From: Lytechinus pictus
Lineage: Eukaryota
DNA length: 64,000 nt
Assembly (NCBI RefSeq): GCF_037042905.1
Contig: NC_087255.1
Location: 22,010,001-22,074,000 of the forward strand
Direction: 5' to 3'
Of the stretch, positions 12,101 through 64,000 are shown piece by piece. Made by a program: the position numbers and the translations under genes. Each line of letters begins with the position of its first letter. Position 1 is the first letter of the stretch. The notes beneath the pieces are model-generated. The model was not told where the DNA came from. It made no database searches and worked only from the letters and a program-made list of their open reading frames with translations.

Positions 12101-15100
12101 ATCTACACACTGTTTCTCCATTTGAAAAAAAATTAATGATTTTGTTGTACCTTTTTTATCCATTAACAGAATGATGTTCCCGCCAAATATCATCGAGGCA
12201 ACATTCAGGACTGTAAGTCAATAATCAATCAATCAACCGATCGATTGAATTGATTGTTTGATTGTTTGATTCACATTCATTTCTTCATTCACTCATTGCG
12301 TTTTTATGCAATTTTGTTTATTTAAATCTTTTGTTTATTCTGTTAATTTATTCCCTTCATTTCTCTATTCGTTCAGTTATTTTTATTTTCAACTGCATTA
12401 TATTTACCTACATTTCTTTAGGTCAATAATATAGTGGAAAAAATTATCACGTACTCTCGATAAAGTGTGATTAATTGGTATGCTTAATTGTCTTGTTTAA
12501 AATGGTCGCTCGCATTTCTGCTTACTTCTTTGCTTATGATTACTACTTTTTTGTGTGGAGATTTTATGAATAAAAAAAAGAAATGAATATAATAAACCTC
12601 TATGAATCAATTTGTCTATGGCGAGACCTCACTACTAAAAACGCTAATAATTTGATACAAGTCAACTCAAGGTAGCAAATATTGACTCAGTGTCATTTGA
12701 TCAGTTTCCATTTTTCTTTCTTCTTTGTAGGTCAGATTTCCCTTGACTTTGCCTATCATTTTTAAAACAAATATTTCGGGGGGGGGCGGGTGCTCAGTGC
12801 AGTAATGAGCCAAACATTTTGAGGGGGCAGATATGGATATATGGTGGATGGAGCAAAAGTTCTAGAATGATGAAAGTGCGAGGGAGCAATATTTTGTTAA
12901 CCAAAATATTATTTTTTGATAGATTTCGACATAATATCCAGAAATCAATATAATATGTCACTTTTTCCCTTTCCATCTATTCTCATTTTTTTTAGACGGG
13001 GGAAACTTTTTAGGGGCCATGGCCCCCAACCCCCCCCCCCCCCACACCATATGTGCGCCAGTGGGTTACCCATTAAAAAATCGTAACAATATTGCAATAG
13101 ATATAATTAATAATGCTTGAATTAATTTTCATATATCTTTATCTACCCGTCTATTTGAATGAATGACACAACAAGCCCATGAGCGCAAATATAACTTTGA
13201 ATTTGACGTGTCTAAGCGGCTGGAATATATACATGTAACTACGATATGACATGTAAATCCAAAATATCTGAATCAATAAATGGCAAAGAAATACATCGGA
13301 TATGAATTTGATCCGAGTTAATGGCATGGATCATATTCCATAAAATAGTAATCCAAAAAGGAGCAAGATAGTATTATGTCCATGCAAGTTAAGGGCAAAT
13401 AAGAGTACATGTGTCCTGGGTATTTGCTAATCCAATTATAAGTTGATTGATTATCTGCTAGGTTGTTGATTGGGAAGTTCATCCTGACGAAAGTTTCTAC
13501 AAAAAAATACCGGAAAAGGTTTGAGGAAAATCCATTAAAAATTAACAAAATTATCAGGATCATGTTTTTTTTATTTGTGACGTCATATACGAGCAGATGC
13601 CCAATATGTTATGTATTGTAAAATACATAGATTTCATATTTTTAGTAGTTCATGACGACTATTTTTTTTTACTTTCAAGAGCGGTATTTTGTTTCTGTTG
13701 ATACACTTGAAGGTACAATAAAACCTATTTTCAATTTTGAAAAGAAAATTACATTTCATTGATGTTTTTTATTCACGATACATTGGAAGCTGTTTGCAGA
13801 TGACGTCACAGATAAACAAATTGAAATTCTATTAACTTTTAAAATCTTTGATGGATTTTCTCAAACCTTCATCAATAGGCCTGTATTTTATATTTTTGGA
13901 GGGGTAATGTTTGCGATAAAATTTAGTTATGGAGAACTTCCTCCCATTTTACTCAATGCCAATTTTTGTGCTCTACGTAAACAAGAATCAACAAGTTATA
14001 AGAGTGAAAAGGTGAAGTAAAGGAAGAAAAAAGAAGAAGGAAGAGGGAAATAAAAAAAAGAATATCAAGAAAATGCAACATGAAAATAACGAAAAGTACA
14101 AGAAGAAAAGGGAAATAGAACAAAGAAATTACATAAGAAGGGCAAATAAAAGCGAAAGAAAATACTGGATGATAATTGAAACAAAAGAGAAAAGAAAAAT
14201 AGGAAAAGGGTACATTAAAGGAAGAAAATAATACTTCGATTTTAAGAAAATTAACAATGTATTCATGATAGTATTGCTTCCCTCCTAATTTTAACTTTGT
14301 CAGTTCTTATCTAACAGCTGGCAGTTCTTGAAATAACTACAATTATGATTAATATCGCTAATAATGCTTTATATTTTAGTTTAGATATATATGTTTTAAT
14401 ACCCTGAATCTATTTTGAGATGATGAAATTGTGACATGTTCGATCGAATTATGATGAAGTATCAACATTTAGAATCAACTATTAAAGTATGTCCCTATGT
14501 AAAAGAATGAATAGAACAAAATGATTTGTACAAAGACGTTAGACTTTATCGATACTCCACAGGAAACGTGTGTTACAAGACAATTAAATATGAGTAATTT
14601 TGAGTAAATAATGAGTAATTAATTAGTAGCGGACATGTCTTTAATTAACCCGGTAAAAACCTACCACATTATTTCTAGCAAGAAAAAGACAAACTGATTA
14701 AAATATCGGGGAAACTCGCGATTGAATTATTTTGGCGAACAGGTTTGCTCAGAAACGATTATGACAGGAAATGTGTGTTTTAAACCGAATCTACTTTTAG
14801 CTGTTTTTAGCTCATGGCCCTGGGAAGGTTTTTCAAGATTTTTCTTGGCGTAGTAGTACGTGTGTTATACGCCATAGGGAATCAGGTTGATATGCTAAAT
14901 TGCAGTTTTGTCCAGAATCACCTCCTTTTCAAATTACGTTCAATTCCAAATCAAACTTTTAAGTCTCCAAATTGCGCGTTATTGGCTGCTGTAGGATGGT
15001 GGGAGGTTTTTTTCAAGGGCAAATACACAATTTTATTATAAATCTCATTCTATTTTATTTCATGTTTTGAGGGGGAGGGGTAACAGCTCTCCGAAACCCC

Positions 15101-18100
15101 TATTCTCCTGACCTGAGCAATATATCCCCCAATTTGTTTATTTTTAGTACAAGACACGGCAGATTACAGAGGTTGTCGAAGCGACGATGATGCCGATGAT
15201 GACACAGACCACAGACATGATGACGGACTCGATGACCACGGACATGATGAATACCACGGGGATGATGAACTCGACAACGATGACGGGTCCCATCACCATC
15301 GTGTATTCGAGTGGGGGTTATGAGTACAAGTCCAATATCCTGGGCCTGGTCGTGTTCTCCTGCGTGTTTGGTGCTGTACTCGGGCGTCTTGGTGAGAAGG
15401 GGGTACCCTTCAAGGCCGTGGTCGAGTCCATCATGGAATGCGTCATGGTCATCGTCGGCTATATCATCTGGTAAGTGATCACAGTTGTGATCTATCGTCA
15501 TGTACAGTGGCGGATCCAGCTATAGAATCCAGCAAAATTATGCAGACACCTATTTTGTTTCTATATGTACCATTGTTTTCTTTCATTCAGTTGGCATCTC
15601 AACAATTCGTTTACGTCATGCCATAGGACTTTACGTTATCACCATATCATATTAATGGGAAAAGATGATCCAAGATATTTCAGAGGATAAAACAAATGAG
15701 CTAAGTTTATAGTACTGAAATTATACATGTATATTTCTTAAAGTCAATTTTAATCCATTTGCCAATATCTAGGATCATTATTTTCACTGTCTAAAGATGA
15801 AAATTTTAATTCGTTAATCGTATACAGGCATCTCCTTCAAGGTGCAAAAATATACACTTTTTAAAGTCCGTCTTGGCATTTTAGTAATCACTTCGCAGAC
15901 GTTTTCTATAACGCAGAGAATCTATTGTCAAAAGCCCTTCAATGACAAACAGCCTTTGTCGAAAATCGGTGAATCAAAACATCAGTGTCGTCCTGGACTC
16001 TGAAAAAACGACATCTTTGCATTTTTTAGTCTAGTCCGAAATCTTAAGAAGAGGTGCTGTCTCGGTTCACCAACTTTCGACAAAAACCTCTCAGCTGTCC
16101 ATTGCGATTTGACGGGCATTTTCAATAGATTCTCAACGTTGCAGAAAGCGTCTGCAAAGTGAGTGCTAAAAAACGTTAATGTCTTAGTTGTCGATAGTTG
16201 AATAATCATACATTCAAACTTCGTTCTTTGGTTATCTCCTGTGGGTGTATTTTCATATATTTTTCTGTAGATTATCTCCTACAAGGTTTAAGTAACAAAA
16301 TATATACAGTACTTTGTAAAAATCCTTCTTTTTTTCTTTTGTCGGTGTCAAGATTCATCATGTTGATAGCAGTTACTCTTAAACTTCTTTCTTTAGGTTA
16401 TCCCCCATTGGAGTATTCTTCCTGGTCCTTGGTAAGATCCTCAGTATGGATGATTGGGCCTTGGTCTTCCAACAAATCGGGATGTACTCCGCCACTGTCA
16501 TCCTGGGTCTTCTCATCCATGGGTTTATTATTCTACCGCTCCTCTACCTCATCTTCACCCGGTCCAACCCCTTCACCTTCCTCAAGGGTGTGGCCCCAGC
16601 CATGGTGACGGCCTTTGCCACCGCATCAAGGTAAGATCGTCCTCAGGGTTTTCACTCAAGCGAGTCATCGCTCAACGACGTACGGAGGATTCCAGAACTG
16701 AGTAAATGTATTGATAATACTCGTTAAATGACATAGAACAGCTCGGGGTCTTTGCCCCCCAAAATGATCATTCTGAACAGTAGTTTTGTCGTAAGTTTCA
16801 GATCTGACGAAAAATATATTGTTTGTCCAAGAATCAAGGCCTGAACTGCTATTTTGATTCACCAATTTTCGACAAAGACTTCTTTGTTGCTCTTTGTCGT
16901 GACGGGCAATACATTTTCTCTGTTCTCGAATCCTCCTTACGTCGCTATGCGAACTTTACAAAATTACGACGGGATCCTTTCTGACACCGGGGCTCCTAAC
17001 CATGTTAACACAAAGTTTGCGAAGGATATGAAAGAACACTTCTGATTGGTTCCTGTTTAATGTTTTGAACAAAATGCGCATGTGACATTGATCTCAATTG
17101 GCCATTGCAATTTAACGATTGATTGTAAGCCAAGGTATCACAGAGCTTCCCCCTACTGATGGAAAGAAACACATTTTTCCACAGTGTGTTCACATTGTAG
17201 AACACAATGTAAGATCATCTTCATACTGTTTAATTTTCAACAACTGTGTGAATCACATACTCTACTATGCCAACACACTGAGCATCCACACCATATAGGT
17301 AGCCGCAGTGTGAAATTCCTTTTACACTGCTAAATTTGACCATTTAACTGTGTGAATAATATTTTCACATTGTCCACTATGTGAACACACTGTGTGACAC
17401 TGTGTTATGTGTAACAGGGTTAGTAGGTCTGTGAACAATTCAACAACATGGACCAACCATATCAAATAATTCTTCTGAGCATACCGGAACCCTACCGCAT
17501 TCCTTATTCATGATTTTCATGAGATTATTCGGACAAAATCATGGGTGGTTTTTTTTTTCTGTGAGAAAAACGCAACTATACAAACCAATAGAAAATATGC
17601 CCATTATATACAGTTTCGACATAAACGGAGGAGGGGGAGTTCGGAAGTGTATGTGTGACTTTGTTTCGAATGTCCTCAGGTTCGATATTTAGTAAAATCG
17701 AATCCGGTCTGAGAAAGACTCTAAAATTGATTTCAGAGCCCTGATAAAAAGCATGTCATTGCTAAACTAAGTAAGAAGATTGTGCCAAATAGCCATCTAT
17801 AGTATAAAATGTGTAATTCCGAGTGTTATGGAGCTGGTTATTCATTTCAAGTGATGACGTCTGTCCCTGCACATTTTGGAAGCAAAAGACTTCACAAAAC
17901 AGAATGTCTTTGTTAAACACACAGTAAATTTTTTTTTAAGTTTGCTAATGAAGTTTTGACGTTGCTGGCTCTTCAAATGTGCTAATTAAATTTAGTCTGT
18001 CGAAAACGTTTATAAGACCGGAGTTTATTAATATGAAATTTACTATTTGAAAATGAGTGAATGAAATCGGTAAACTGGGCGTAAATATATAAGTCTATTC

Positions 18101-21100: not shown

Positions 21101-24100
21101 CTATGAATCAAAAGTGCTGAATATTCTTTGAAATTAAATGATCCTGTAAAAAAAGAAAGGACAATCCAATGTTGTAAGAATGATTGATAGATTTGAGGGG
21201 CGTCCTTTTCAAGCCTTTGTGCTTATGACTGTTCCCTCCCATGCAATGATTGTTTATTGTTATTTTACCATGAGATATTGTCAATATATTTTTCTGTTGT
21301 ACGATTTATTTTTGCATGGAAATAAAGAATCAATCAATCAATCAATTTGTTCAATTTGAAAAAAAGTGTATTGGGTATATTATCAGCACGCGAATCGATT
21401 TACTCATCACTGCTCATTGAGTGTACGTGGACAATAAGAGATCAACGACATACACATCTTGGAATTGTCTTCACTCTAAAACAATATTTGGGGAAAATGC
21501 TCCGTGAGGGTAATTATGTGTCCAACCAACATTGCGCATTTCTTTTGGGCATTTTTATATATCAAGTGTGATGAAGATTCGGCCCATTCTAACGTTATTA
21601 CTGCTTATTTTTTAACCTTACTGCACAATATGCTTCCCACATTGGGTGAAATACTGCCCAAAATTGGTTGGACACATAATTACCCTCGTTCTGGTTAAAA
21701 TTTTACCCAATATGTTTTTACAGTGTTGAACGCGTTTGGGATCTGCAGCTGGCGAACTCCGTTTACGCGTATTCCTATATCCTCTGAGGGAGGGCGCTAT
21801 GAGATTATTGCGTCACAGACAAGGGTTTATATTCTTGGAATAATTTGTTCTTTCTCCCACAGTATCACAGCTACCCTTGCTAGTGTCGGGGCAGCAGGCG
21901 TGCCACAAGCCGGTCTCGTAACCTTAGTAATCGTCCTCAACGCAGTGGGTCTACCAGCCGATGACATCACTCTTATCCTCGTCATTGATTGGTTTCTGTA
22001 AGTGACGTCATTTCGATTTATATTCTCCTTTGTGTGCATTAGGTAGAAATAATCAAAACAAAAATCTTAAACTTTGGATGGTGTCTTTTGCTTTCAGAAT
22101 TCAGATGAATCAGATATTTGTAAGAGTGTTTTATTTTACATTATTGTTTAACAGAAACATTTTAAATAACTTATACACTTGTTCGTTTTTATTGTGATGC
22201 TGATATGGATCCTTAACAACCAAAATATGAGTTCAAATCAAATTATCAAACAGATTCTGTATAAAAAAAAATGTGCCTGCTCAATTTACCAATAACCACT
22301 TTAATTGGGATACCGCTCCCTCTACTTCAGTTATTCGATCCCTTGGTTCGTTTTAAAGTCCCTTGTCTCCTTATGTATGAATGTAATTGATTTGAAATAA
22401 AATATTGGGAAAGTTAAGTTACACATTAAAGGTTCTGAGTCATGCAACTATATTTTGCTCTTATTAGTTTTCAATTGTTTTTCTAAGAATTTTAACATTA
22501 TTAATATGATTTATTTATCTAGGATTAATAAGATATTGCTGGTTTTAGAAGTTAATTTCATAGTTTCTCACGCTCATAAGCCCCGCCTCCAGAAAAAGAT
22601 CGAAAACTCTCGAGCTCGCTAGTCACGTGACTATACGTCATCAAGGGAATCTGGCAGCTCTGCAAACTCGATCATCGCGCACGTAAAAAGTTTTCGTCTA
22701 TTATGTTTACGTATTGTAGCGCTGTATTGTTGAGAAAGTTTACCGAGTTCTTTTTGGAAAAGTTTTGTACATTTGTGATATTTGCGATAATATCAAGATG
22801 CCGGCGAGATGCATCGTCGGAGGTTGCAGCAACACTACGAAGGATGGTGCCAGCTTGCATTTGTTTCCCAAAGATGCAAATTTACGCAGAATATGGGTCT
22901 CGAAAGTGAAGTTGACCCGAGCAAATTGGAGCGGCCCCAGTGACTGGAGCGTGGTGTGCAGTAGCCACTTCGAAGATGCGGATTTTGATGACGGGTTGCA
23001 TGCTGCTTTTGGCATGAAGAGGACCCGGCGGCTGAAGCCCGACGCTGTGCCTAAAATAAAGAGTGGGTCATCAATGCAAGTAAAGAGGAGTGGGTCACGG
23101 ACAGCAGCGGACAAACGAAAGAAAATGAGGGTGAGCATATTATCTATTAGTAATAGACTTTGTTTAAAGTTTATCTTTGCAATTGTTGTGGTCAGTCAGT
23201 TCAAGTTCAACGACGGAAAGTGTGAGGATCACGTCAATTTCCTTATTTTATTTATTTTTTATTTTGAAGGTGTTTATGATGGTGGGCCCCAAGTCTGCGC
23301 ATCAAACAATTTGAGTTTAGATTAACATGAATTTCTTCTTATTATTTATTAACAAAATCTTTCCGTTAATAATGTTCCTTATATTATTATTAGTATTTTA
23401 GTAATTGTACTAAATTTCTCATTAAAAAAATGAAAGAAAATAGGCCTATAGGATTTTCTTGGAAAAACCTCGTAGGCCTACTGTAATTTTCAGATTTGTC
23501 AAAAAATGGTAGGCCTACCCCGAGCCCATGTCTGCGCACTCAATCTTTGCACACGATTCGGGGATTTTGATGAGAAAGGCTGCATTTTGATGCCGTCACA
23601 TGAAATGCCCTAAATCCATCATTTTGAGTCAGATTTTTTTTTAAATACCTGTCAGCCTGTAGACCTAGGCTATGGCTAGGTATTGCATGTGTAGAGCTCG
23701 TGCTCGTTGCGTATCTTCTTTTACTAGAATTGCGCTGATACGCGTGTGCGTAGACTTGGGGGAACTTGCCATAGGATACGCCTCGAAAATAAAAAAGGAA
23801 ATTGAAGTGATCCTCAAACTTTCCTCAAGAGTCCAGGCTCCACATTCATGACATTGGAAACAGGTCTACGAATTCTAAATTTCTGTTGCGAATTAGAAAT
23901 CCTATTAATTGTGAGTTGTATTTCAAGACAGGATCTACATTGTAGTACGTGGCTAGTGCTGTGAAGAGGTACAGTAGGCCCAACGTTAGGTCTAAAAGTT
24001 TTCTTGTTTCAGTTGTTTGTGCCATTGTGGTTCATTTCTCAAGTAAGGAAATATACAAACTCTTTTGGGGGTATGGTGGCTCTAGTGGTAAAGCGCCTGC

Positions 24101-44409: not shown

Positions 44410-47400
44410 ATGGATGAGGTGGGCATCAGAAAATCAAAAGGCTTTGACAACGTAACATCCACTCTGAAACAGGTCGCGCAAGATATCGGAAATATATACC
44501 AAACGACGATGAATGGGGATGTTATCCACGACGCCGACGACGCCGTCGCCTTGGAGAACGGTGAGATGACGGAGTTTCGTGATAGCGACGAGGAGAGCAA
44601 TAGCGGTAAGCGACGATGTCCGTCATGGCTAAACGCGGAGAACATCCTCCTCTTCCTCTTGATCTTCTCCGTTATCATGGGCTTCGTGCTCGGGTACGTG
44701 CTCGGGCTCTTCTTTGACTTCACCCAGGATCAGATCAACTACCTAACCTTTCCTGGAACACTCTTCATGAACATGCTGAAGATGATGATCGTTCCCCTCA
44801 TCGTGTCCAGTCTCATCAACAGTCTGGCGTCGCTCGACTCGGCGATGTCGGGTAAGCTGGGGCTCAGGGCGGTGTGTTACTACATGTTGACTACCTTCAT
44901 CGCAGTCATCCTCGGAATCGTTCTCGTGGTCTCCATTCAGCCTGGTAATCGAGGCGGAGCAGAGAAAGACCCCGATGGCGAAGAGGAAGAGGTTAATACA
45001 GCCTACGCCTTCATGGATCTTATCTTGTAAGTCATGATTTTTTTTTCTGAATTCTGACGAATCGAAAATGACCACTGAAAATAATAGGGACTGTCATTAA
45101 TGATTATGAATAACGAAGTCAATGATTTAATGTGGTTTCTAAATTATCATATTTTGTGCTATTTTACTTTTGAGTTTCTGTATTCCCGACTTGTAATGAG
45201 GGTAGACGTGTGTTTTGTTTATTCATTCAGGATGATTTTGTAGTTTTGTATTGCATGACGAAGATTAAGAAGATCTTGTTGATGGTGAACGCAGAAGTGT
45301 GTTGGCATTTATTTCATGATGATTTTGTCAATCGATTTGTTTTTAAAGTTTGTGATTTCAATGAGACTGATGACGGAGAATATGATGGTGGTGATTATGA
45401 TAAAAATGATGGCGGTGACGATTTTCATGATTATTCCACTTGTTAAGATAAATAATATAAGTTCAGGTAAACGTCCATGGATTACAAAAGGTATGTATAC
45501 TACAATCTATCAAAAGAAGAAATGTCTTGCAAAGAAAATAATTCCCGTAGAAATTAATTACAAGGAATATTTACACGAGAGGTTCGAATAATCTATTTTC
45601 CTAAAATCAGCTGATCATCTTAAGATATTAAACATTGTTAAGTCTCTCAAAAACAGTAGGTCATTTGGGCATGATGAAATAAGTTCAGCATTGCTAAAGC
45701 AAATAATTGGCTCAATCCTAACTCCTTTACTACATAATAATCTGTCCATTTCAACTTGTGTGTTCCCTTCTTTTCTCAAACTAGCCAAGGTTATTCCTGT
45801 TCATAAAATGGGATAGCACCACCACCATACGTAACTATAGACCAATTTCAATTTTGTCTAGTTTTTCCAAAAAAAAATGTTTATAACAAATTAATCCCCT
45901 TTCTCGACAAAAATCACCTTTCAATCCCAACCAGTTGGATTTCACAGGTATCACTCAACGGACCTTGCGTTGTTGAAATTTTGTTACTATAAAATGTGTC
46001 CAGTTCTCTGGCAAATCGTTAGCACGTTATTGGTGTATTCTTCGACCTGAGCAAGGCATTTGACACCCTTGACCATTCAATACTGTTTCATAAGCTTCAT
46101 CATTATGGAGTAAGGGGCATTTCCCTAAACTGGTTTACTAGTTATCTTTCAAATAGAAGACAATAGACATGCTAGATTTTTCTTATTCTGGTATATCAGT
46201 TTTAAGGTGCGGTGTACCGGAAGGTTCTATATTGGGTCCTTTGTTATTTCTGATTTATATCAATGATATTTTTTTGGTGTCAAAAACATTAAATAACAGG
46301 TTGTTTGCAGATGACACAAGTGTTTTTCTATCACACCGTGATATTGATATCTTAGAAAACACCATTAATGTCGAACTTTCGAAACTATCTAATTGGTTTC
46401 GAAGTAATATGTTATCACTGAATGTTAAGAAAACAAATTATATACATTTTAAAGTTAGGAATTCAGGTGCTGACCATGATTTAAGATTGAAACTTGACAA
46501 TGCTTTGTTGGAAAGAAAGACGTCTACTAGTTTCCTTGGGGTCTACATTAGTGATCAACTTAATTGGAACGATCACTTGAAACACATCAGTAAACCAATT
46601 TTTCGAAATATAGGTATACTATATAAAGTCTACCTTGTACCTGGTAAAATACTATACATTTTGTACAATACTCTTATTCTACCTTATGTGTCATATTGCA
46701 ATATTCTTTGGGCAACATCAAGGAGTGTCACAAACACAACTATCCTATTGCAAAAGAAAGCTGATGAGTTTCTCTTTCATATCCATGCAAAATAATTTCA
46801 CAAAATGAAAAATGATCCTCTAGATTTGGATTACCTTTTTTCTTTACCTACCTGCTTCTTAGTATTTTCTTTTATACATATATGTATTTTGTATTTTCAA
46901 AGGTGTGACAACGGCTCAAGCATCTGCTTATATTGTCATCAGCTGAAAGTCTGCCACTTTCATTTTATGTNNNNNNNNNNNNNNNNNNNNNNNNNNNNNN
47001 NNNNNNNNNNNNNNNNNNNNNNNNNNNNNNNNNNNNNNNNNNNNNNNNNNNNNNNNNNNNNNNNNNNNNNNNNNNNNNNNNNNNNNNNNNNNNNNNNNNN
47101 NNNNNNNNNNNNNNNNNNNNNNNNNNNNNNNNNNNNNNNNNNNNNNNNNNNNNNNNNNNNNNNNNNNNNNNNNNNNNNNNNNNNNNNNNNNNNNNNNNNN
47201 NNNNNNNNNNNNNNNNNNNNNNNNNNNNNNNNNNNNNNNNNNNNNNNNNNNNNNNNNNNNNNNNNNNNNNNNNNNNNNNNNNNNNNNNNNNNNNCGAGTT
47301 TGACAGTGGTAATTTGGCAATGGCGACGATGGTAATGATTATGGAGGTTAGGATGTCGGTGCTGATATTGATATGTAATAATGATGATCACGATCGCGAT

Positions 47401-54363: not shown

Positions 54364-57300
54364 GGGTGTGTGTGTGGCGTATGTGCGTGTGTGCGTCGAG
54401 CTTCTGTTTAAATGTAAGTTATAAAAAAAAACTCAATGCAATATGAGAACCATTTTTTCCTAAAGTTAATTCAAATAAAACCATTCGTTTACCAGATGGA
54501 ATAAGTTCACAGACTTTTAACACGATCACAACTTTATATTTGAAATTTCGTCAAACAACAATTTTGATCGCACGAATCATGTTCTATCGATAGTTAAACG
54601 CCTTTGAACGATAACATTTGGTTGGAATACAGATTTTAGTAATTAAGAAATGCGCAATTCTAGTTTCAACAAACTACTTGCTTATACAAACAATAATTCA
54701 TTTTCCATAGATTTTTGCCATTTCCTTGATTTTGGTGCTCAAAAAGGGGGTGTTTTTTGTTTAATAAGAATTATATTCATTAAACCTATTGATTGTGATT
54801 GGTCATCCTGTGACACTGGATAGACTTTCACCAGTATTCTGGTTATTTAGCAGTTAATTTGTCCAACTTTAGCAATTTATGCATAAATCTAAATTAATAT
54901 TACTAGTCTGAACAGAGTTATTGAAATCGTTCGACATTGTAGTTGCGATCATGATATAAGCTGTTTGGACTAAGATAACCCTGCTAGAAAGAACACATCA
55001 GTGTCATACATTGTGATCACAGTGTGTTCACATAGTTGACTATGTGAAAATATTATTCCCACTGTTTAAATGCTCAAATACAACATTGTAAAGGTAATGT
55101 TCACACGGTGGACACCTCGACAGTGTAACTGTTCACAGCGTGTTTACATGGTCTACTGTGTGGATATGTGATTTACACAGTTGGAATGTAGTTCAAATTT
55201 AACAGTGTGAAGGTGATTTCACATTGTGTTCCACACTGTGAACACACTGTGGGACACTGTGGTCTCTCCAGTAGCCTTAGGGAAGATTATATTCCTTTTA
55301 CATACATAGGAAAGATGCCACTTACTCCGGTAAAGAGTTCCGTTTGGCGAGATGCTATATAGACCTGTACCTCGTCACCAAAACTCGTCACCCTTCTGAA
55401 CTCTTGACTGACCTCTCGATTTTGACATTTCTTTCATTTTCAGGAACATGTTTCCAGAGAACATCGTTGAGGCATGCTTTAGAACGGTAATTATAGAATC
55501 TTTATGACATTATTCACTCAATCATGGAGACCTGGACCTGACGTCGCGCTGATTGGACCTAACCAAGCTTTCCAAAGACGGCCAGAAGGAAACTGGATGA
55601 ACAATTTTTTTTCATCTATTCATATTTTCTATACCCCAAGAAACATGACATGTCTACCAATGACGTGATTTATTGATTGATTTACTGATTGACTGGTGGA
55701 TTGATCGATTGACTGGATGATTGATGGATTGGTTGATTGATTGATTGATTGATTTGTTGGTTGGTTGATTGATTGACTGACTGATTGATTGATTATTGAT
55801 TGATTACAAAATTATGGAGAGATGGTTATTTCGTTGTTTCGCATAAGTGAAGTAATGAAGGAATAACTGATTATTTGCTTTATTTATCTGTTATTCGTTT
55901 CTTCGATTGAAAGGATGAATTGGAGAATGGACAATTGAAGATTGAATGCGCGTTTTGTCCTAAATATTTCAAACATCAGAACGCGAAGACTTAGTATAGC
56001 TTCACTCAGAGTGACGACCATAAATATTTCTCTGAAATATAATATTCTGAAGGTCAAATGTTTCAATATGTTATCATAGCCCAATAAATTATAAGATTGG
56101 GCGATTGAAACTGTCAAGAAGGTTTTATCGATTTATTGCAAGTTTTTGTAGATATATTGAGACTAAACCTTCAATTCTTTAACTAATCGGATTGCGTCGT
56201 TGTATCTTCATTCAGTTTAAAACAGCGGGCATCAAGACAGTGGTGCCAGTTCCTTCTCTGACCACTGGGGATTTCTTCAACCTAACCTTGATGTCAGGAC
56301 TGACCATCCACCAATCAATGGGCTTCATCAACGGAACCTTACAGACCATCGGGCAGAAGACCATGGATTTCAGGTCAATGGCGCTTGACGCCCAAACCGT
56401 CGCTGATGACATGGACATGTTCCTACAGGATATGGACAGTACCTACATATTCTTGATGGAAGCAATAAACGAAGCCAAAGACAACAATCCTGCATGGGAC
56501 ACGACTACAGCGAATGATCTTCTTGCAGATTTCTTGAACCATATAGAAGATCTAAGAGCCGTTGTGGATGGCCTTCCATCGACGGGACAGCTGGATGAAA
56601 TGGACATGACACAGCTGGGTAACATGACCGGGATGGTACTGTGGGCAGCGGGTGAAACGGTAACGGACTTGTTATCAAGTCTAAAGACGCTTGATAATGT
56701 AGATATACCCACCTTAAACGCAACGTCCCATGCTCTTCACTTGATCATTTCTTCCATGAATGATGTAGTGTACATGGTCGAACCGCTTCATCTAAGTTCG
56801 CTTATCCATACAACAAACACAGATGTTGTAAGTTTGGTTGATATCATCGCGATGTTCCAACCTGATGACATAGAACTCACCAGAAAGGTTCACATCATGA
56901 ATGTCAACTTGATCAACCTTGTCCTAGCCACGATGCAGGACCTTCAGGGCAGTGACCGCCTTGAGCTCACCCACGTCTCCCAATCCATGCAGAAACTGTC
57001 CACCAACCTGGTCTACCTGATGGACATGACCGAAGACGTGTATACCTTGGACTTCCTCAACCAGATCAGCACACTCCTGCATGACATGAGTGGCGCCATC
57101 AAGCACATGTCCATGGTACTATACTCGCCACGTACGCTCAAGATGGACTCGCTTCTGCAGCTCAACCAGATCATCGCGCAGATGAATGAGGTAGTGAACA
57201 CCATGTCTGCAGTTCTAGAAGAGAGTACGGATTACACCATCTGGTACAGAGGAAACACCACCGAGATTGTCGAGACTGTCTGGGAAGGAACCTACGTCTA

Positions 57301-60300
57301 CAGTATGAATATCCTTGGGCTCGTTGTCTTCTCCATCGCCTTCGGGGTCGTCGTTGGTCGCATGGGTGACGATGGAAAAGTTGTCATCAGCTTCTTTTCT
57401 GCTACCAATGATGCCATCATGAAACTGGTCATGATCATTATGTGGTAAGAAATTGTGAGATTTTTCACTTTTAAGTACGGCAATGTCCTTATTTCATAAA
57501 TTCATTTTTATAGATCAGATTTCTCATTTTACCCTCAACTCTTTTACCTGTTGTGACTTGCGTTTAGAAACATACACTCTGATATGATCTTACTTCTGTT
57601 TTGTCGCATCTTTTTCAAATAAATAGTTGATACCTATTTCAATGCCTGAATGTTCACATTGTCCTGTCCCTATAATCTTGATAATTTCTGGGCCTTCAAA
57701 ATCAAAAGATAAGTCATTATTCACACTATGTTATTACTGTTAGCACGATCACTCGATCACTGGGGCAACGGACAGAACCGGTCAGTGACGGTTCGATGGC
57801 CATCCTTACAAAAATGGAGAATAGCTTTCTTCCGGGCTACTAATATCTAACGGATATTACGATTAACTACGTTTGTATTACGACAGTGCTGCGGTCCCTT
57901 AACCACCATTTAGGACTTTTCGCACATTTAGACTCATTTAATGACAAAGTTCGACCAAGAAGTATTTGTATAGAGATATGTTTAATCAAAACAGCAGATT
58001 AGTCCCCGACTATGGTCAAACGACATATACAATTTTTCGTCAGCTCCCAAACTTAGGACGAAACTGCTCCTTCGGTTCACCAATTCTCGACAAAAACATC
58101 CCAGCCATTCTTTGGCATTTGATGGGCATTTTCAATACATTTAATGTCTTCTTGAACCCCCGGAGTGAAAACTCCCAAAGGACAGTCGATCATGACTATA
58201 TTTTATTTTTCCGCTACTATAGAATGAAAATAGGCCTGTATAATCTACTGATATTTCCTCTTTTCCTCATTACTATCATGACCATAACTATACCTATTCT
58301 CTCTCAGGTATGCTCCTATCGGTATCCTCTTCCTCATCACCGGAAGCATGGTCGGGGTGGAAGACTGGGCCGAGATCTTCACTCAGCTAGGTCTTTACAT
58401 GGCTACAGTACTATCTGGACTCGCTATCCACGGAATCATCATCCTACCTCTTCTTTACTTTGCCGTCGTCAGGAAAAACCCGTATAAGTTCCTCAGTGGG
58501 GTCACCCAAGCTCTCTTTACAGCACTAGGGACATCGTCAAGGTAAGCTAGTCCTACTCATGATTTCATTCTCATATTGATTATGTACCGTCGCATTTGTA
58601 TGTACCCCCACTTTCCATATATATATTGTCCCATTTACACGATGCATTACACATATTACACACATGTAAAGAAGTGGGTTTTTATTGATATGATTTGAGA
58701 TTTTTTCATCAGGTAAAATAATGCATTAACATGTCGAGAATAATATTTTTCTGACAAACTTTATCATGACTCGAATCAAAACAGGACCACATGACCGGCT
58801 TGGTTGGGGAGAGCTATTGATAGAGACATAAAAACGATGCCAGACATGCTGCATCACTTATGTCACCCTTTATAAGACTATACCTGAACTGCTAGATAAA
58901 GATTTAAGATGCATTCCGTGATAGAATTAACGATGATTTATAATGAATATATTTTTCTGTCGTCTATAGTTCGGCAACCCTACCAGTAACAACCCGATGC
59001 TTAGAGGAAGGCCTCGGGGTAGATCCCCGTGTTGTTAGGTTTGTTCTTCCGGTCGGTGCGACGATCAACATGGACGGCACAGCTCTTTACGAAGCAGTAG
59101 CAGCCATCTTTATTGCCCAAGTAAACAACATTTCACTAAGTTTTGCTGATCTCGTAACAATAAGGTAAGAAAATTGACTTATTTGTTCTTTCATAGTCTT
59201 ATCAAGATGTTCTCGCGCACAATATCTCACTTTTCTTTAATTTTTATTGATTTGTACATGTCCACCTATTATTCTATTCCTTTTACAATTAAATGACTCT
59301 GTAAGCAATATTTTATTTATGTATAAACTTTGGTTTATACTACTTATACTATTTATGTGAATATAGTAGGAGTATGTTGCACTGTACAAGCTCCGCTTTT
59401 TATCAGCCTCTTCTATTCCCAACCCGTTTATTATGATTATCTTGATTATAATGTAGCCTACATATACATTTTTTTTTGTTTTATTGCTTAAATAAATATC
59501 AAGTTATATGGAACAAAACATATTGTAAATGTTGGAAATGGAAATGAATGAAATAAAAATAAATTGTACGAAAAATCATACTTCATTTCTAGAAAGGAAT
59601 GTATTTTGGCGTATTTCGAACCATTAGATAATAACATTGTGCTCATTGTCAATCTGTGTAACCCTGTCAAGGTCCGACATACAACCAGCCCATGAAATCG
59701 AATAATGCCATCCACCCTTGCTATTTTTTTATTATTTTTTTGCTGATTGTTGCAAGCAAAATTACGTTAGAATATTTTAGATTCTGCGCAACAGTTAAAA
59801 AAACAGTTATTGCTTACATAAATATCAAGTTATATGGAACAAAACATATTGTAAATGTTGGAAATGGAAATGAATGAAATGAAATGAATTGTACGAAAAA
59901 TCGTACTTCATTTCTAGAAAAGAGTGTATTTTGGCGTATTTCGAACCATTAGATAATAACATTGTGCTCATTGTCAATCTGAGTAACCCTGTCAAGGTCC
60001 GACATACAACCAGCCCATGAAATCGAATAATGCCATCCACCCTTGCTATTTTTTTGCTGATTGTTGCAAGCAAAATTACGTTAGAATATTTTAGATTCTG
60101 CGCAACAGTTAAAAAAATACTGCCACTTTATCCAATCATTTTAACAAAAATATTGTCTCTCTCTCTCCTCTTTCGTTTTATTCTGACATGTCCTAGAACA
60201 AAACAGGGCATACGATAGGGCGATAATTATTTGCAATATAAATAATCGATCACTCTAACTATTCATGCTATTACTTCGATCCTAAAATTCTGATTGTGCC

Positions 60301-61361
60301 TTTTTCGCCAGGTCCGCTTTACAACATGATATAGTATTTTATATCTATCTTTTGATTTAATTTTAACTACGGCTTTAAACATGATAAAAAACAGTTTTAT
60401 TTCAATATTGCGACTTCGGGTTAATTTAAACTTTACAAAATAAGAAAACGTTATATTTTCTTTCTTCATTTTAGTTTAACTGCGACTTTCGCGAGCATCG
60501 GAGCAGCAGGTATTCCCCAAGCCGGACTCGTCACCCTCGTCATCGTCCTAACCGCAGTCGGCCTACCGACAGACGACGTTGCACTCATCCTTGCTGTCGA
60601 TTTCATCCTGTAAATACACACTCATTCATAATCTCTTGGCCCCTCCCCCCCCCCCGTCTTTGGAACAAACTACCTCCATCTCTCCGAAACCTCTCTTCCC
60701 TTGACCTCTTCAAAAAAATCTCAAAACACACTTAAATAACCATAAACCTTAACTTGTCTCATGCCATCAACAGCGCTTTGTATCCTCTGGAAAAAGCGCT
60801 ATATAAATGCAATTATCATGATTATTATTATAATTATAATAATAATAATTATTATTATTATTAATCTATGTTTTACTTGTTTTGCTTATTTAGCGCTTTA
60901 TTTGACACTTTGGAAGTCTTCTTCTTCCTCTTCCTCTTCTTCTTCACAATCTCCTCCTCCTTCGTCTTTTTCGTCTTCGTCTTCTCCTTCTTCTTTTCTT
61001 CATCTTCTTCTTCCTATTCTTCTTCTTCTTCAGTTTTTGATGAATTTAGAATGGCCACGGAGCTGAGCCTCTCGGAAGATCATAACTGCATTATTTTTTC
61101 AACATTTCTTTCATCTATTTTTCTTTATGCTACAGTGATCGATTCCGAACGATGGTCAACGTCGAGGGCGACTCATACGGTGCCGGGATCGTCGCGAAGC
61201 TATCGAAGAAAGACCTCAAGAAAACAGACGAGATGGACGCTCTTGAAAATGCCGAAGTCACATTCAACGGAAAGACAAATAAGGACAGAAAAGACAGCGA
61301 TGTGCATGCCTACACAAACGGTACCTATTCGCATCACGACGAAAGTAATACAGCTCTTTAA
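44410..61361 (+). CDS. SLC1A: SLC1/EAAT-family transporter, paralog B, ~892 aa, with a giant extracellular insertion; exons 44410-45026, 55444-55486, 56216-57444, 58308-58541, 58970-59164, 60475-60609, 61136-61361
   Basis: GT-AG introns. Exons of 43, 234, 195 and 135 nt match paralog A exon lengths exactly (2679 nt total). Motifs: [81 protein letters not shown]. The start Met (44410 vs 44509) is uncertain. Confidence 0.92.
45465..46765 (+). mobile_element. Degenerate CR1/L2-like non-LTR retrotransposon (reverse transcriptase remnant) in intron 1 of paralog B
   Basis: Motifs [54 protein letters not shown] and LFADDT, with frameshifts and stops. Confidence 0.9.
46971..47294. other. Assembly gap (324 N)
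   Basis: Run of n characters. Confidence 1.
48702..48900. mobile_element. Palindromic CACT-ended MITE
   Basis: ACACTCTTAAAAATGTTGGCAACATACTGTCCACACAA is mirrored by TTGTGTGGACAGTATGTTGCCCAACATTTTAAGAGTG; a related element lies at ~21471-21725. Confidence 0.75.
49240..50960. repeat. Composite interspersed repeat: internal direct repeats, a tRNA-like segment and a terminal hairpin (Helentron/HINE-like, tentative)
   Basis: Three partial copies of CCCATAG...GGGCATGATCCC...AGCTACAACAT (~49247, 49699, 49925); tRNA-like sequence on the - strand at 49603-49673; GACCTT motifs; hairpin at 50931-50957. Confidence 0.45.
51891..52440. mobile_element. Non-autonomous Kolobok-like MITE
   Basis: TTAA|AGGACAAGTCCACC...GGTGGAATTAACCT|TTAA; shares GAAAATTTCATC.AAATCGGAT with 38428-39009. 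Confidence 0.8.
52983..53175 (+). repeat. Perfect 96-bp tandem duplication
   Basis: AGCAAATACAGAAATGTGCAC...AAGTTTGAG occurs twice. Confidence 0.9.
54333..54395. repeat. (GT)n microsatellite
   Basis: Direct reading of the sequence. Confidence 0.9.
55667..55805. repeat. Degenerate (GATT)n tetranucleotide repeat
   Basis: Direct reading of the sequence. Confidence 0.85.
59481..60117 (+). repeat. ~325-bp tandem duplication in an intron of paralog B
   Basis: Two near-identical units starting TTATTGCTTA.ATAAATATCAAG at 59481 and ~59808. Confidence 0.9.
60820..61031. repeat. (ATT/AAT)n and (TCT)n simple repeats
   Basis: Direct reading; these explain the poly-I, poly-S and poly-F ORFs in the track. 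Confidence 0.9.
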
Positions 61362-64000
61362 TTCAGACTTTATTCATTCCAAGATAACTGCTATCCTTCT
61401 CTACTGTTGTTGCTGATCAACATTATCAGAGAAGGCCACGCACAATTTATTGGACACATCGCTAGATGATCATTATATTTTTGTGTATCGATAAAGACAC
61501 TTGATTTGCTTATAATCATATGTTATATTGAAATAATGTATGAATATTATAAAACATAAATTTTGGTTCTTGAGTGTGCACAGCAGTTTCATGTTCTCCG
61601 TCAAAGAAATGAGAATTATTATATATTTTTTATTGAAAACATGAATAGAGTCTATGATTGTTCAAACATTGCAATGCAAACACAATGCAGACATAGTCTA
61701 TGTTGCATCAGCTAGATATTTTGCTAGTATTTTCCAAACAATGTACAGTGGATAGCTGCCAGCCAAAAAATGTAATCAATGTAAAAACAATATTTCATGA
61801 GGCTGAATATCCATCATTAGCCTCTTAAAAAAAAATCATTGAATAAAATCAATACCTTCGATATGTCCACTGCAAATTTGAATTAGCAAATAACATAAAT
61901 ATACACTAAAAGTTTGATATTTTGGTTAGTCACTTAACCACAAAGGCATCAATTTTCACCTTTTGTAGCCAACCTGCATAAAAAGATTAAATTTGATTTT
62001 TATTCGGGGGATGGCAATCAAAATGTGCGCTAAATCTATGAATGAGGTCTGTCTTGTATATGTAATTCAGCCCGACAGCCGGAGGAAATCAATTAACAAT
62101 ATATATTTTTCCAAAAGTGAGTTCTAATTTCTTCCATATTTTCGATGCATAGCAGTATTGATGAATAGAATTATTGATCAAATGCCGATTTGAAATTTTC
62201 AATAAATCAACCAATCAATCGATTAATCAATCGATCCATCGACCAATCGAGCAGTATATCAATCTAAATCTAAATATATCAATCGAACAATTCACATTAC
62301 AAAAAGTTTCTAAACGAGATAACATCATTTGCCTGGAAACGATATTATGTATTTCATTTCATTTAAAATGTTTTCAACTATATGATATCGATGTAATTTT
62401 TACATGGCACGGACCAGTATTGACCAGCTGAAATTATGCTTTCTGTCGAAAAGTTTATTGTCTCCAATTATTATAAAGCACGAAATTGTGACTTTATAAA
62501 ACACTGTGCGTCGCATCAACAAACATCGAAGTCACCATATTTACTTAAGCTTTGGGTCTACTGTCCTATCTTGAAACTGGGGCTACTTTACGAGATAAGA
62601 TGACATCGACAATAAATTGACAGTATTAAATTCTGTCCAAGGTTCACCATTGTAATCATGTTAAATTTACTTCTTTACAATGGGTGAGTAATAATAGACA
62701 GTATAATATTATCACACAGTAAACGTGTCATGGGATCTTAATGGCTCCCCTTGTACATTTTGATTGCACTGCAAAAAAAAAAAAAAAAAAACTGTATTTG
62801 CAGTATGATATTTTTTCCACTGCAAAGTGAGAAATATTTATTTTATATAATTACAGATATAATCTGTACAAAAGATACATTGTACAAAAGATACATTGTG
62901 ATTATTGCGGTATTCTACTTTCGAGTTATTAATATTATTATTATTCGTTTTAATACAGTACTTGAGGTTTTATTTGGGAAATAAAATGTTGAAGGAGGGA
63001 TCCGTAGAAGTGGTGACGCGAAATTATATTAAACTCATTTATATTCCAAATTATTGAAGGAGTAAAAATACTTATTTAATTTACCCCCAAAGGTGACAAA
63101 TTTAACCTACATTAAATCTCATTTAAAATCCTTCCATAAACACTTCATATGCTCATTGATTTGTCCGTGTAGTTCTTTCAATTATTATTGCGGGTAAAGG
63201 TACAAAGTAAAAATGTCTGAAAGGGATGAATTTTAAAACATAAAACTACTTCAAATCACTCTGTCTTACAATATTTTTGTAGTTAGGATAAATGGCAACA
63301 AATGTGACAATGTGCCGGTTATCTAACATTTTTTGGTGGATTTTTTTTAATAGATACAATATCATGATCACCTGACCCTGCTACTCGACTTGCCTTTTAA
63401 TTGTTAGTCTCTTATCAAGCATTTATGTCCGATTTTCATTGTGCCCATGTTGGCATATTACAGACCCTTATTGAAACTCGATTGCTTTTCAAACTTGAGT
63501 TAAAGGGGAGTGAACTGTTTGTCATCTCTCATTGACTGTGTGTTATAAAAACATATTCTTAAAATATACGTTTTCAGATATCCATAAGACCAATAATAAA
63601 TTGTATTTGTATAGAAAAACTAAAATGTTTTGATAGGAAAAGCAATTGTTTTGCTACTTGGTAACGTAATTATTGCGGTATAAATATATTGAGTAGTTAA
63701 TTAGCATGTTATCATTCAAGTGGGTCTATATCACTAGACTACACTAGCATAATGGGTCAGGAAACTAGCCAAGTATGAGTAGTTGAGGACTCGAGATGGC
63801 GCTATTTAAACTGTTTGTCAGCAGATGTATAGTGAGTAGTGCGAAAAATAAAAATCAGTTAGCATACACCTCAGTTGATACCTGTTGCAATGACCCTCGA
63901 CGTGCTGTTGGGGGTCCTTCTTATTTTCTTAGGATTATTTTCTCTTTTTTTTCCATCCCCCAAATAAATATATTTCTGTCAAAGAAACTGCAATATCAAC

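Follow-up and report, generated by a model that had tools for sequence, protein, structure and literature searches.

Here, we analysed a window of 64,000 nucleotides from Lytechinus pictus (NCBI RefSeq assembly GCF_037042905.1, contig NC_087255.1, positions 22,010,001 to 22,074,000 of the forward strand; all positions below are those of the window), which holds two SLC1 transporter genes in tandem, both on the plus strand. The first, paralog A, has an ordinary loop between the transmembrane segments (TM) 4b and 4c, while the second, gene B, carries at the same place a large insert, which is the subject of this study. Gene B consists of seven coding exons with GT-AG borders throughout (Table 1), which yield a product of 892 aa when joined as they stand. 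From end to end, this product can be aligned with an 888-aa protein of Lytechinus variegatus (96.6% identity, a single 4-aa gap) that is listed by NCBI as 'excitatory amino acid transporter 3-like', and the tandem layout is kept in the L. variegatus genome, in which an ordinary SLC1 gene encoding 537 aa lies upstream of the insert-bearing one. Exon 1 ends at a GT donor and is found at 98% identity by a tblastn search with the L. variegatus orthologue, and the 43-nt mini exon 2 is the sole match in the window to its back-translated pattern. Exon 3 remains open for 409 codons plus two bases, follows a CAG acceptor (56213-56215) preceded by a polypyrimidine tract and ends at a GT donor (57445-57446) within the sequence GTAAGA; tblastn with the orthologue gave 93.5% identity across 56198-57445, an interval spanning the exon. 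The neighbouring exon borders at 55486 and 58308, assigned in a preliminary description of this DNA, agree with our gene model.

Compared to the homologous exon of paralog A with its 323 nt, exon 3 of gene B contains an extra 906 nt, equivalent to 302 aa. The translation, the AG/GT borders and this difference thus bear out the earlier claim of a single open exon of 1229 nt with about 302 additional residues. The complete TM4b-4c loop comprises 360 aa in gene B, in comparison with 24-102 aa in 13 ordinary animal SLC1 proteins. Homology of the exon to SLC1 proteins (Pfam SDF as well as EAAT and ASCT chains in the PDB) is confined to its last approximately 60 residues, while the approximately 350 residues before this end contain no cysteine and 45 acidic (Asp and Glu) versus 14 basic (Lys and Arg) residues. 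The net charge of the ectodomain amounts to about −31 per protomer. With 13.5% Leu, 10.6% Thr, 9.2% Asp and 7.4% Met, the insert was correctly described as acidic, free of stops and cysteines and rich in these four residues; the additional statement that it is rich in His did not hold (2.9%). All five N-glycosylation sequons that had been listed were found, at exon residues 22 (NLT), 39 (NGT), 136 (NMT), 168 (NAT) and 347 (NTT). The insert is not low-complexity, again in line with what had been noticed, and no tandem repeats were detected in the DNA of exon 3. Spectrin-like or other internal repeats at the protein level were considered and dropped, as self-blastp and a profile self-comparison with hhalign gave only weak off-diagonal signals (P about 0.01).

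Table 1 Coding features of the two SLC1 genes and predicted structural elements of the gene B insert (window coordinates).
Feature	Position	Strand	Description and basis
Paralog A, 43-nt mini exon	12170..12212	+	Same phase as in gene B; scan of AG...GT-bordered 43-mers against the gene B peptide: score 52, next best −4
Paralog A, exon homologous to gene B exon 3	15148..15470	+	323 nt; 58-aa loop of ordinary type, Met- and Thr-rich
Gene B, exon 1	44410..45026	+	Start codon, cytoplasmic N-terminus, TM1 to TM4a/b; SDF positions 1-118, Pfam SDF E 2e-26
Gene B, exon 2 (43-nt mini exon)	55444..55486	+	NMFP...ACFRT, conserved end of TM4b; AG/GT borders and frame
Gene B, exon 3	56216..57444	+	1229 nt; whole TM4b-4c loop with insert, TM4c, start of TM5
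First stalk strand (predicted)	56216..56245	+	Leads out of TM4b; AlphaFold2, exon residues 2-9, residues 219-229 in the full-length orthologue; low to medium confidence
All-alpha ectodomain, ten helices (predicted)	56306..57229	+	AlphaFold2, exon residues 31-338; recurs in the full-length orthologue model
Second stalk strand (predicted)	57269..57301	+	Leads back to TM4c; AlphaFold2, exon residues 352-359, residues 568-578 in the orthologue; just after the sequon at residue 347
TM4c and start of TM5	57311..57444	+	Pfam SDF positions 132-178; PDB EAAT1/3 E about 1e-12
Gene B, exon 4	58308..58541	+	TM5 to TM6; SDF positions 178-254
Gene B, exon 5	58970..59164	+	HP1 and TM7 NMDG motif; SDF positions 255-319
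Gene B, exon 6	60475..60609	+	HP2 and start of TM8; 100% identical to the L. variegatus orthologue
Gene B, exon 7	61136..61361	+	TM8 with D..DRFRT..NV.GD motif, C-terminal tail ending T-A-L, stop codon

Apart from the insert, gene B is well supported, by sequence comparison and by structure prediction, as a member of the EAAT branch of the SLC1 family (sodium:dicarboxylate symporters) with a complete protomer fold comprising scaffold and transport domain. The Pfam family SDF (PF00375) was recognised in its exons with 34-93 bits each at a cut-off of 27.9, the last exon scoring 15 bits, and in the L. variegatus orthologue with an E-value of 1e-117 in two stretches divided by the insert. The orthologue also aligns with human EAAT1 in two blocks (residues 67-225 with 38-200 and residues 570-852 with 211-491), and the gap between EAAT1 residues 200 and 211 places the insert exactly in the TM4b-4c loop, the location in an SLC1 glutamate transporter that had been proposed for it. 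The motifs SSSATLP of HP1, NMDG of TM7, GIPQAGLVT of HP2 and D..DRxRT..NV.GD of TM8 are all present in the exons of the window and align residue for residue with EAAT1. Judged from this alignment, the transport machinery of gene B is unchanged, including the acidic-selecting arginine of TM8. This residue is a mark of acidic amino acid transport that separates the EAATs from the ASCTs, which lack it and are carriers of neutral amino acids. In addition, the AlphaFold2 model of the full-length L. variegatus orthologue superimposes on human EAAT2 and EAAT3 structures with target-normalised TM-scores of 0.90-0.95 and root-mean-square deviations (rmsd) of 2.6-2.9 Å.

The AlphaFold2 model of the exon 3 product, built from an alignment of 21 family sequences, reached a predicted TM-score (pTM) of 0.68 and comprises ten helices, each 21-32 residues long, that lie within exon residues 31-338. 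Block means of the per-residue confidence (predicted local distance difference test, pLDDT) were 78-97 at residues 41-240, mostly above 84, and 56-78 at residues 241-340. In eight of the ten predicted helices, the hydrophobic moment has its maximum at 98-106 degrees per residue (z 1.9-3.0 against shuffled sequences), confirming the amphipathic periodicity noticed before; the two central helices are more evenly hydrophobic, and none of the ten reaches the hydrophobicity of a transmembrane segment. Amphipathic helices combined with a hydrophobic central pair are expected of a soluble bundle with buried central helices. The prediction for the insert is hence a folded domain, all-alpha and about 320 aa long, with ten amphipathic helices, so that the folded helical domain postulated from the letters of the DNA is borne out at the level of a structure prediction. 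Two short predicted strands flank the helices and would form a stalk. In the full-length orthologue model they lengthen to 11 residues each, located directly after TM4b and directly before TM4c, and the region of the second strand aligns with the loop ends of ASCT1, ASCT2 and EAAT3 in the PDB. In human EAAT2, a juxtamembrane antiparallel beta-hairpin is the sole ordered part of the TM4b-4c loop (PMC9372063). According to the models, the strands of the ectodomain take the position of this hairpin, and the domain stands in place of the ancestral loop's tip, which was disordered and glycosylated. The topology of the TM4b-4c loop in SLC1 proteins is luminal or extracellular (PMC9372063, PMC5048300), and the sequons kept in the family fit such a site. 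Addition of the core to the prediction lowered the pTM from 0.68 for the exon alone to 0.51 for the full-length orthologue, which suggests that the orientation of domain and core towards each other is undefined.

Does this fold have relatives? A Pfam scan of the insert in five family members gave no domain match. A Foldseek search of the insert against the PDB yielded nothing significant (best E-value 0.054, TM-scores of at most 0.25, rmsd mostly above 20 Å), and no match with an E-value below 0.01 was obtained in the viral-fold library BFVD. The top Foldseek matches, ClyA/Hbl-type toxins, the TTYH ectodomain, glypican and the trypanosome HpHb receptor, are bundles of long helices like the insert, but none of them is significant and the resemblance is generic rather than a sign of relationship. 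A pore-forming toxin fold of the ClyA type was considered and rejected (TM-score of 0.09-0.15 to ClyA/Hbl). In a profile search of PDB sequences, matches to EAAT and ASCT chains were restricted to the transmembrane part. An isolated match of the same search to the neck repeats of DC-SIGNR (3jqh_A, E-value 4e-5, 58 columns) covers profile positions 95-152, corresponding to about 56500-56670 of the window, and probably reflects coiled-coil composition. Judged from sequence and model searches, the insert is without detectable relative outside these transporters.

The insert alone (339 aa, no SLC1 part) served as query in an exhaustive HMMER search of 1.84 billion representative proteins. Twelve matches at E ≤ 0.001 were obtained, 11 of which share homology with the insert, and in these SLC1 loop sequence flanks the insert wherever their sequence reaches the loop ends. 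The twelfth match, a weak hit to a repetitive and unrelated protein, was discarded as spurious. Those of the 11 that have a named source are from echinoderms, namely the sea cucumber Apostichopus japonicus, the sea star Patiria miniata and the feather star Anneissia japonica, with inserts 23-27% identical to that of gene B. Further full-length members were found in L. variegatus, Diadema setosum, Strongylocentrotus purpuratus (XP_781833, 82% identity in the insert), Acanthaster planci, Asterias amurensis and Holothuria leucospilota. A second protein search, based on a word index and the alignment of the exon only, was swamped by ordinary SLC1 proteins and added one sequence. In 11 full-length or near-full-length members, the loop measures 346-369 aa, contains 5.3-9.5% Met and 4-7 sequons, and has a net charge of −21 to −33; cysteine is missing in all of them bar one member with a single residue. 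Of 15 aligned sequences, 11 retain the sequons of exon residues 136 and 347; those of sea stars are located elsewhere. At the level of sequence, the ectodomain is homologous and constant in size across echinoids, holothuroids, asteroids and crinoids. Between these classes, identity is only 25-35% in the insert, compared to a mean column identity of 78% in TM4c-TM5. Family indels (11% versus 19% of columns) were also tested for avoidance of helix interiors, a modest difference that we did not use as evidence. As a separate observation, the 1386-aa model from Holothuria leucospilota consists of two fused tandem SLC1 genes, each bearing an insert (two NMDG motifs, two loops of about 360 aa), and Apostichopus and Anneissia have at least two insert-bearing copies each. 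The subfamily has thus been duplicated in some lineages.

The ratio of non-synonymous to synonymous substitution rates (dN/dS) of the insert is 0.17 towards L. variegatus (dS 0.14) and 0.11 towards a more distant urchin-like contig (dS 0.94), compared to 0.06-0.09 in the rest of the transporter; the insert is under purifying selection. The donor position after ...IMW is common to open reading frames (ORFs) on genomic contigs of urchins resembling that of the window, of sea cucumbers and of a sea-star-like genome, indicating that this exon border is old. Moreover, an intronless contig of 3090 nt from a public run contains an uninterrupted ORF of 863 aa with all exon junctions, the whole insert and short flanks, and thus has a transcript-like appearance that would fit spliced mRNA. 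NCBI also lists a second isoform of the sea-cucumber gene, which has a different C-terminus and retains the insert in full. These results speak to the suspicion that there is no real domain at all, the exon being a mis-annotated retained intron, an exonised fragment of a mobile element or a disordered, mucin-like spacer. An exon four times as long as that of its paralog, a product in which no database domain is recognised and mobile-element debris in the introns of the locus could all be explained in this manner. Nevertheless, the frame is open in every sampled species across 23-96% identity and selectively maintained, the exon borders are canonical and shared, the transcript-like contig and the NCBI models retain the insert whole, the 1.84 billion representatives contain no transposon or other homologous protein, and a helical fold free of repeats is predicted with confidence. 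Artefact, transposon and spacer readings are therefore contradicted by the data, and we regard them as extremely improbable. Among the checks that had been suggested, conservation in relatives and the search for a transposon protein or known domain came out in favour of the insert: it is in frame in close and distant echinoderms, with the low dN/dS values given above, and Pfam, the PDB, BFVD and the protein representatives offered no relative outside these transporters.

The composition of the loops raises another possibility, which is that the ectodomain binds metal ions or buffers oxidants by means of its methionines, comparable to the Mets motifs of CTR1-like copper transporters. Met is abundant in the loops of all members and accompanied by Asp and some His, and paralog A has 12 Met in only 58 residues. 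Against this reading, only four alignment columns have Met in at least 70% of the members, 14 of the 26 Met positions of gene B are generic hydrophobic positions in the family (Met, Leu, Ile, Val or Phe), as expected in the core of helices, the motifs MxM and MxxM occur 0-5 times per sequence and are low and variable in number, and the number of His varies from 4 to 10. We thus consider metal binding or oxidant buffering improbable as the function of the domain.

Paralog A offers a direct comparison. It is the tandem neighbour of gene B on the same strand and shares with it the 43-nt mini exon, the exon phases and a loop rich in Met and Thr; it differs by a loop of 58 aa without helical domain and by one extra intron in its N-terminal part, and its L. 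variegatus orthologue is the 537-aa protein mentioned above. The loop of paralog A, with 12 Met and 14 Thr, echoes the composition of the gene B insert and may preserve a trace of the ancestral loop out of which the domain developed. Human EAAT1, EAAT2 and EAAT3 (SLC1A3, SLC1A2 and SLC1A1) resemble gene B in fold, in their high identity outside the loop, in the HP1, NMDG, HP2 and TM8 motifs, in the position of the loop with its N-glycosylation sequons and in a PDZ-ligand-like C-terminus. All insert-bearing family members end on S/T-x-L/M (TAL in gene B), a C-terminus that resembles class I PDZ ligands and is also seen in vertebrate EAATs, and paralog A ends on TRL. The difference lies in the loop itself, which has about 58 aa in human EAATs and is disordered apart from the juxtamembrane beta-hairpin (PMC9372063, PMC5048300), whereas gene B has 360 aa and a predicted ten-helix domain. 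In ASCT2 and ASCT1 (SLC1A5 and SLC1A4), this loop likewise projects from the scaffold domain, and its ends align with the strands flanking the insert. The loop of ASCT2 is used for contacts with extracellular proteins, as seen in its complexes with syncytin-1 and suppressyn in the PDB (8ouh, 8oui). In contrast to that of gene B, the ASCT loop is short, not helical and has no sequence similarity to the insert. For the loop of EAAT2, the authors of the structure suggest that it meets luminal or extracellular proteins (PMC9372063).

But, what would a domain of this size do on a transporter with otherwise ordinary machinery? TM4 lies within the scaffold (trimerisation) domain, which remains in place throughout the elevator-like motion of the transport domain. 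Therefore, the ectodomain should ride on the static part, with one copy per protomer and three per trimer. We propose that it would stand roughly 45 Å tall in the extracellular space on a flexible hairpin stalk, that Na+-coupled uptake of glutamate or aspartate would still be possible with the ectodomain in place, and that the domain would serve to bind an extracellular partner or matrix or to organise the transporter at the surface. Most likely, it would have arisen a single time, in the stem lineage of the echinoderms, when the ancestral loop, disordered and glycosylated, was elaborated. On balance, we consider it probable that gene B encodes an intact EAAT-type SLC1 transporter with an echinoderm-specific orphan ectodomain on its static scaffold, three per trimer, for which a structural or docking role is the likeliest; a direct part of the ectodomain in the transport cycle appears less likely. 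A docking role is favoured because the same loop binds extracellular proteins in mammalian relatives such as ASCT2, because the tether looks flexible, and because the size of the fold is fixed yet the identity between classes (25-35%) is far looser than in the transport machinery. The preliminary description had pictured the domain as tripled above the central bowl of the trimer and the protein as a receptor, adhesion or lid chimera, both of which are inferences.

The main rival of a docking role is a regulatory one, in which three acidic helical domains above the extracellular basin act as a lid or filter and control the access of substrate or ions or the anion conductance. The considerable negative charge of each protomer is located at the loop next to the substrate entrance, cross-linking suggests that the TM4b-4c loop is mobile and can move during the transport cycle (PMC5048300), and the loop size is tightly conserved in the family. 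However, the loop emerges from the scaffold domain and Förster resonance energy transfer work cited in the same study saw no large movements of it (PMC5048300). The low confidence of the predicted stalk and of the orientation suggests a flexible tether, the insert is far less constrained than TM4c-TM5, and the ionic strength of seawater would, from general knowledge, screen electrostatic effects. Taken together, we regard a lid or filter as unlikely. A bolder version of the docking reading, to which we give slightly more credit than to the lid but still hold to be doubtful, is that the ten-helix fold was born de novo in the disordered loop in the echinoderm stem and forms a three-fold extracellular crown with a receptor-like second activity towards a ligand, a component of the matrix or the surface of another cell. 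If this were true, the product of gene B would be a true transporter-receptor chimera.

Returning to the docking ectodomain that we favour, several points weigh against it and temper our confidence. The role of the ectodomain is itself only inferred, and a domain this acidic so close to the substrate entrance could influence how anionic substrates gain access, which favours the regulatory explanation. An extracellular domain without any disulfide is unusual. The alignment behind the predicted fold is shallow with its 21 sequences, pLDDT values reach only 55-80 in the C-terminal third, and the orientation of the ectodomain relative to the core is uncertain in view of the full-length pTM of 0.51. 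Furthermore, the sequencing run behind the 3090-nt contig is not confirmed as RNA, and brittle stars and hemichordates were not among the species sampled by name.

The non-coding parts of the locus contain further ORFs. The long last intron of paralog A holds an open frame of 201 codons with a THAP zinc-finger domain (22720-23322, plus strand, E-value 3e-16). In intron 1 of gene B, an ORF fragment resembling reverse transcriptases (46157-46792, plus strand; Pfam RVT_1, E-value 2e-10) adjoins an assembly gap (46971-47294), and an ORF at 45592-45813 may be related to it; the fragment appears to be debris of a retrotransposon that has no connection with the insert. Short ORFs of the NQSI repeat type, which are translated simple-sequence repeats, occur at 55632-55811 (minus strand) and 62165-62428 (plus strand) in introns and flank of gene B.

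With regard to novelty, the preliminary description had stated that the arrangement was not recognised as described. This stands for the literature, in which we found no paper mentioning that SLC1 transporters of echinoderms have a large insertion in a loop, and none citing four of the accession numbers of the family, subscription journals being outside the scope of the search. It does not stand for the databases, as NCBI lists orthologues from at least nine echinoderm species under the name 'EAAT3-like'; the names in these sources say nothing beyond 'EAAT-like'. Hence, the sequences are not new and are public under generic names, while an orphan, lineage-specific ectodomain on a canonical EAAT is undescribed in the literature that we found.

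SLC1 proteins are among the best-studied secondary transporters, and still the eukaryote-specific TM4b-4c loop is without a clear role. In the echinoderm family described here, the domain predicted to fold within this loop, about 320 aa long, has apparently been there since a time before the split of the living classes. A loop that is six-fold larger, folded and anciently conserved is probably notable to the specialist, even if the core mechanism of the transporter is probably ordinary. The scaffold domain appears to tolerate a large ectodomain and to have put one to use. Because no relative is detected elsewhere, the insert is a clean candidate for a domain born within a loop, for which the tandem short-loop paralog provides a natural comparison within the same genomes. 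As the gene is present in the model sea urchins S. purpuratus and L. variegatus, its expression and structure are open to direct study.

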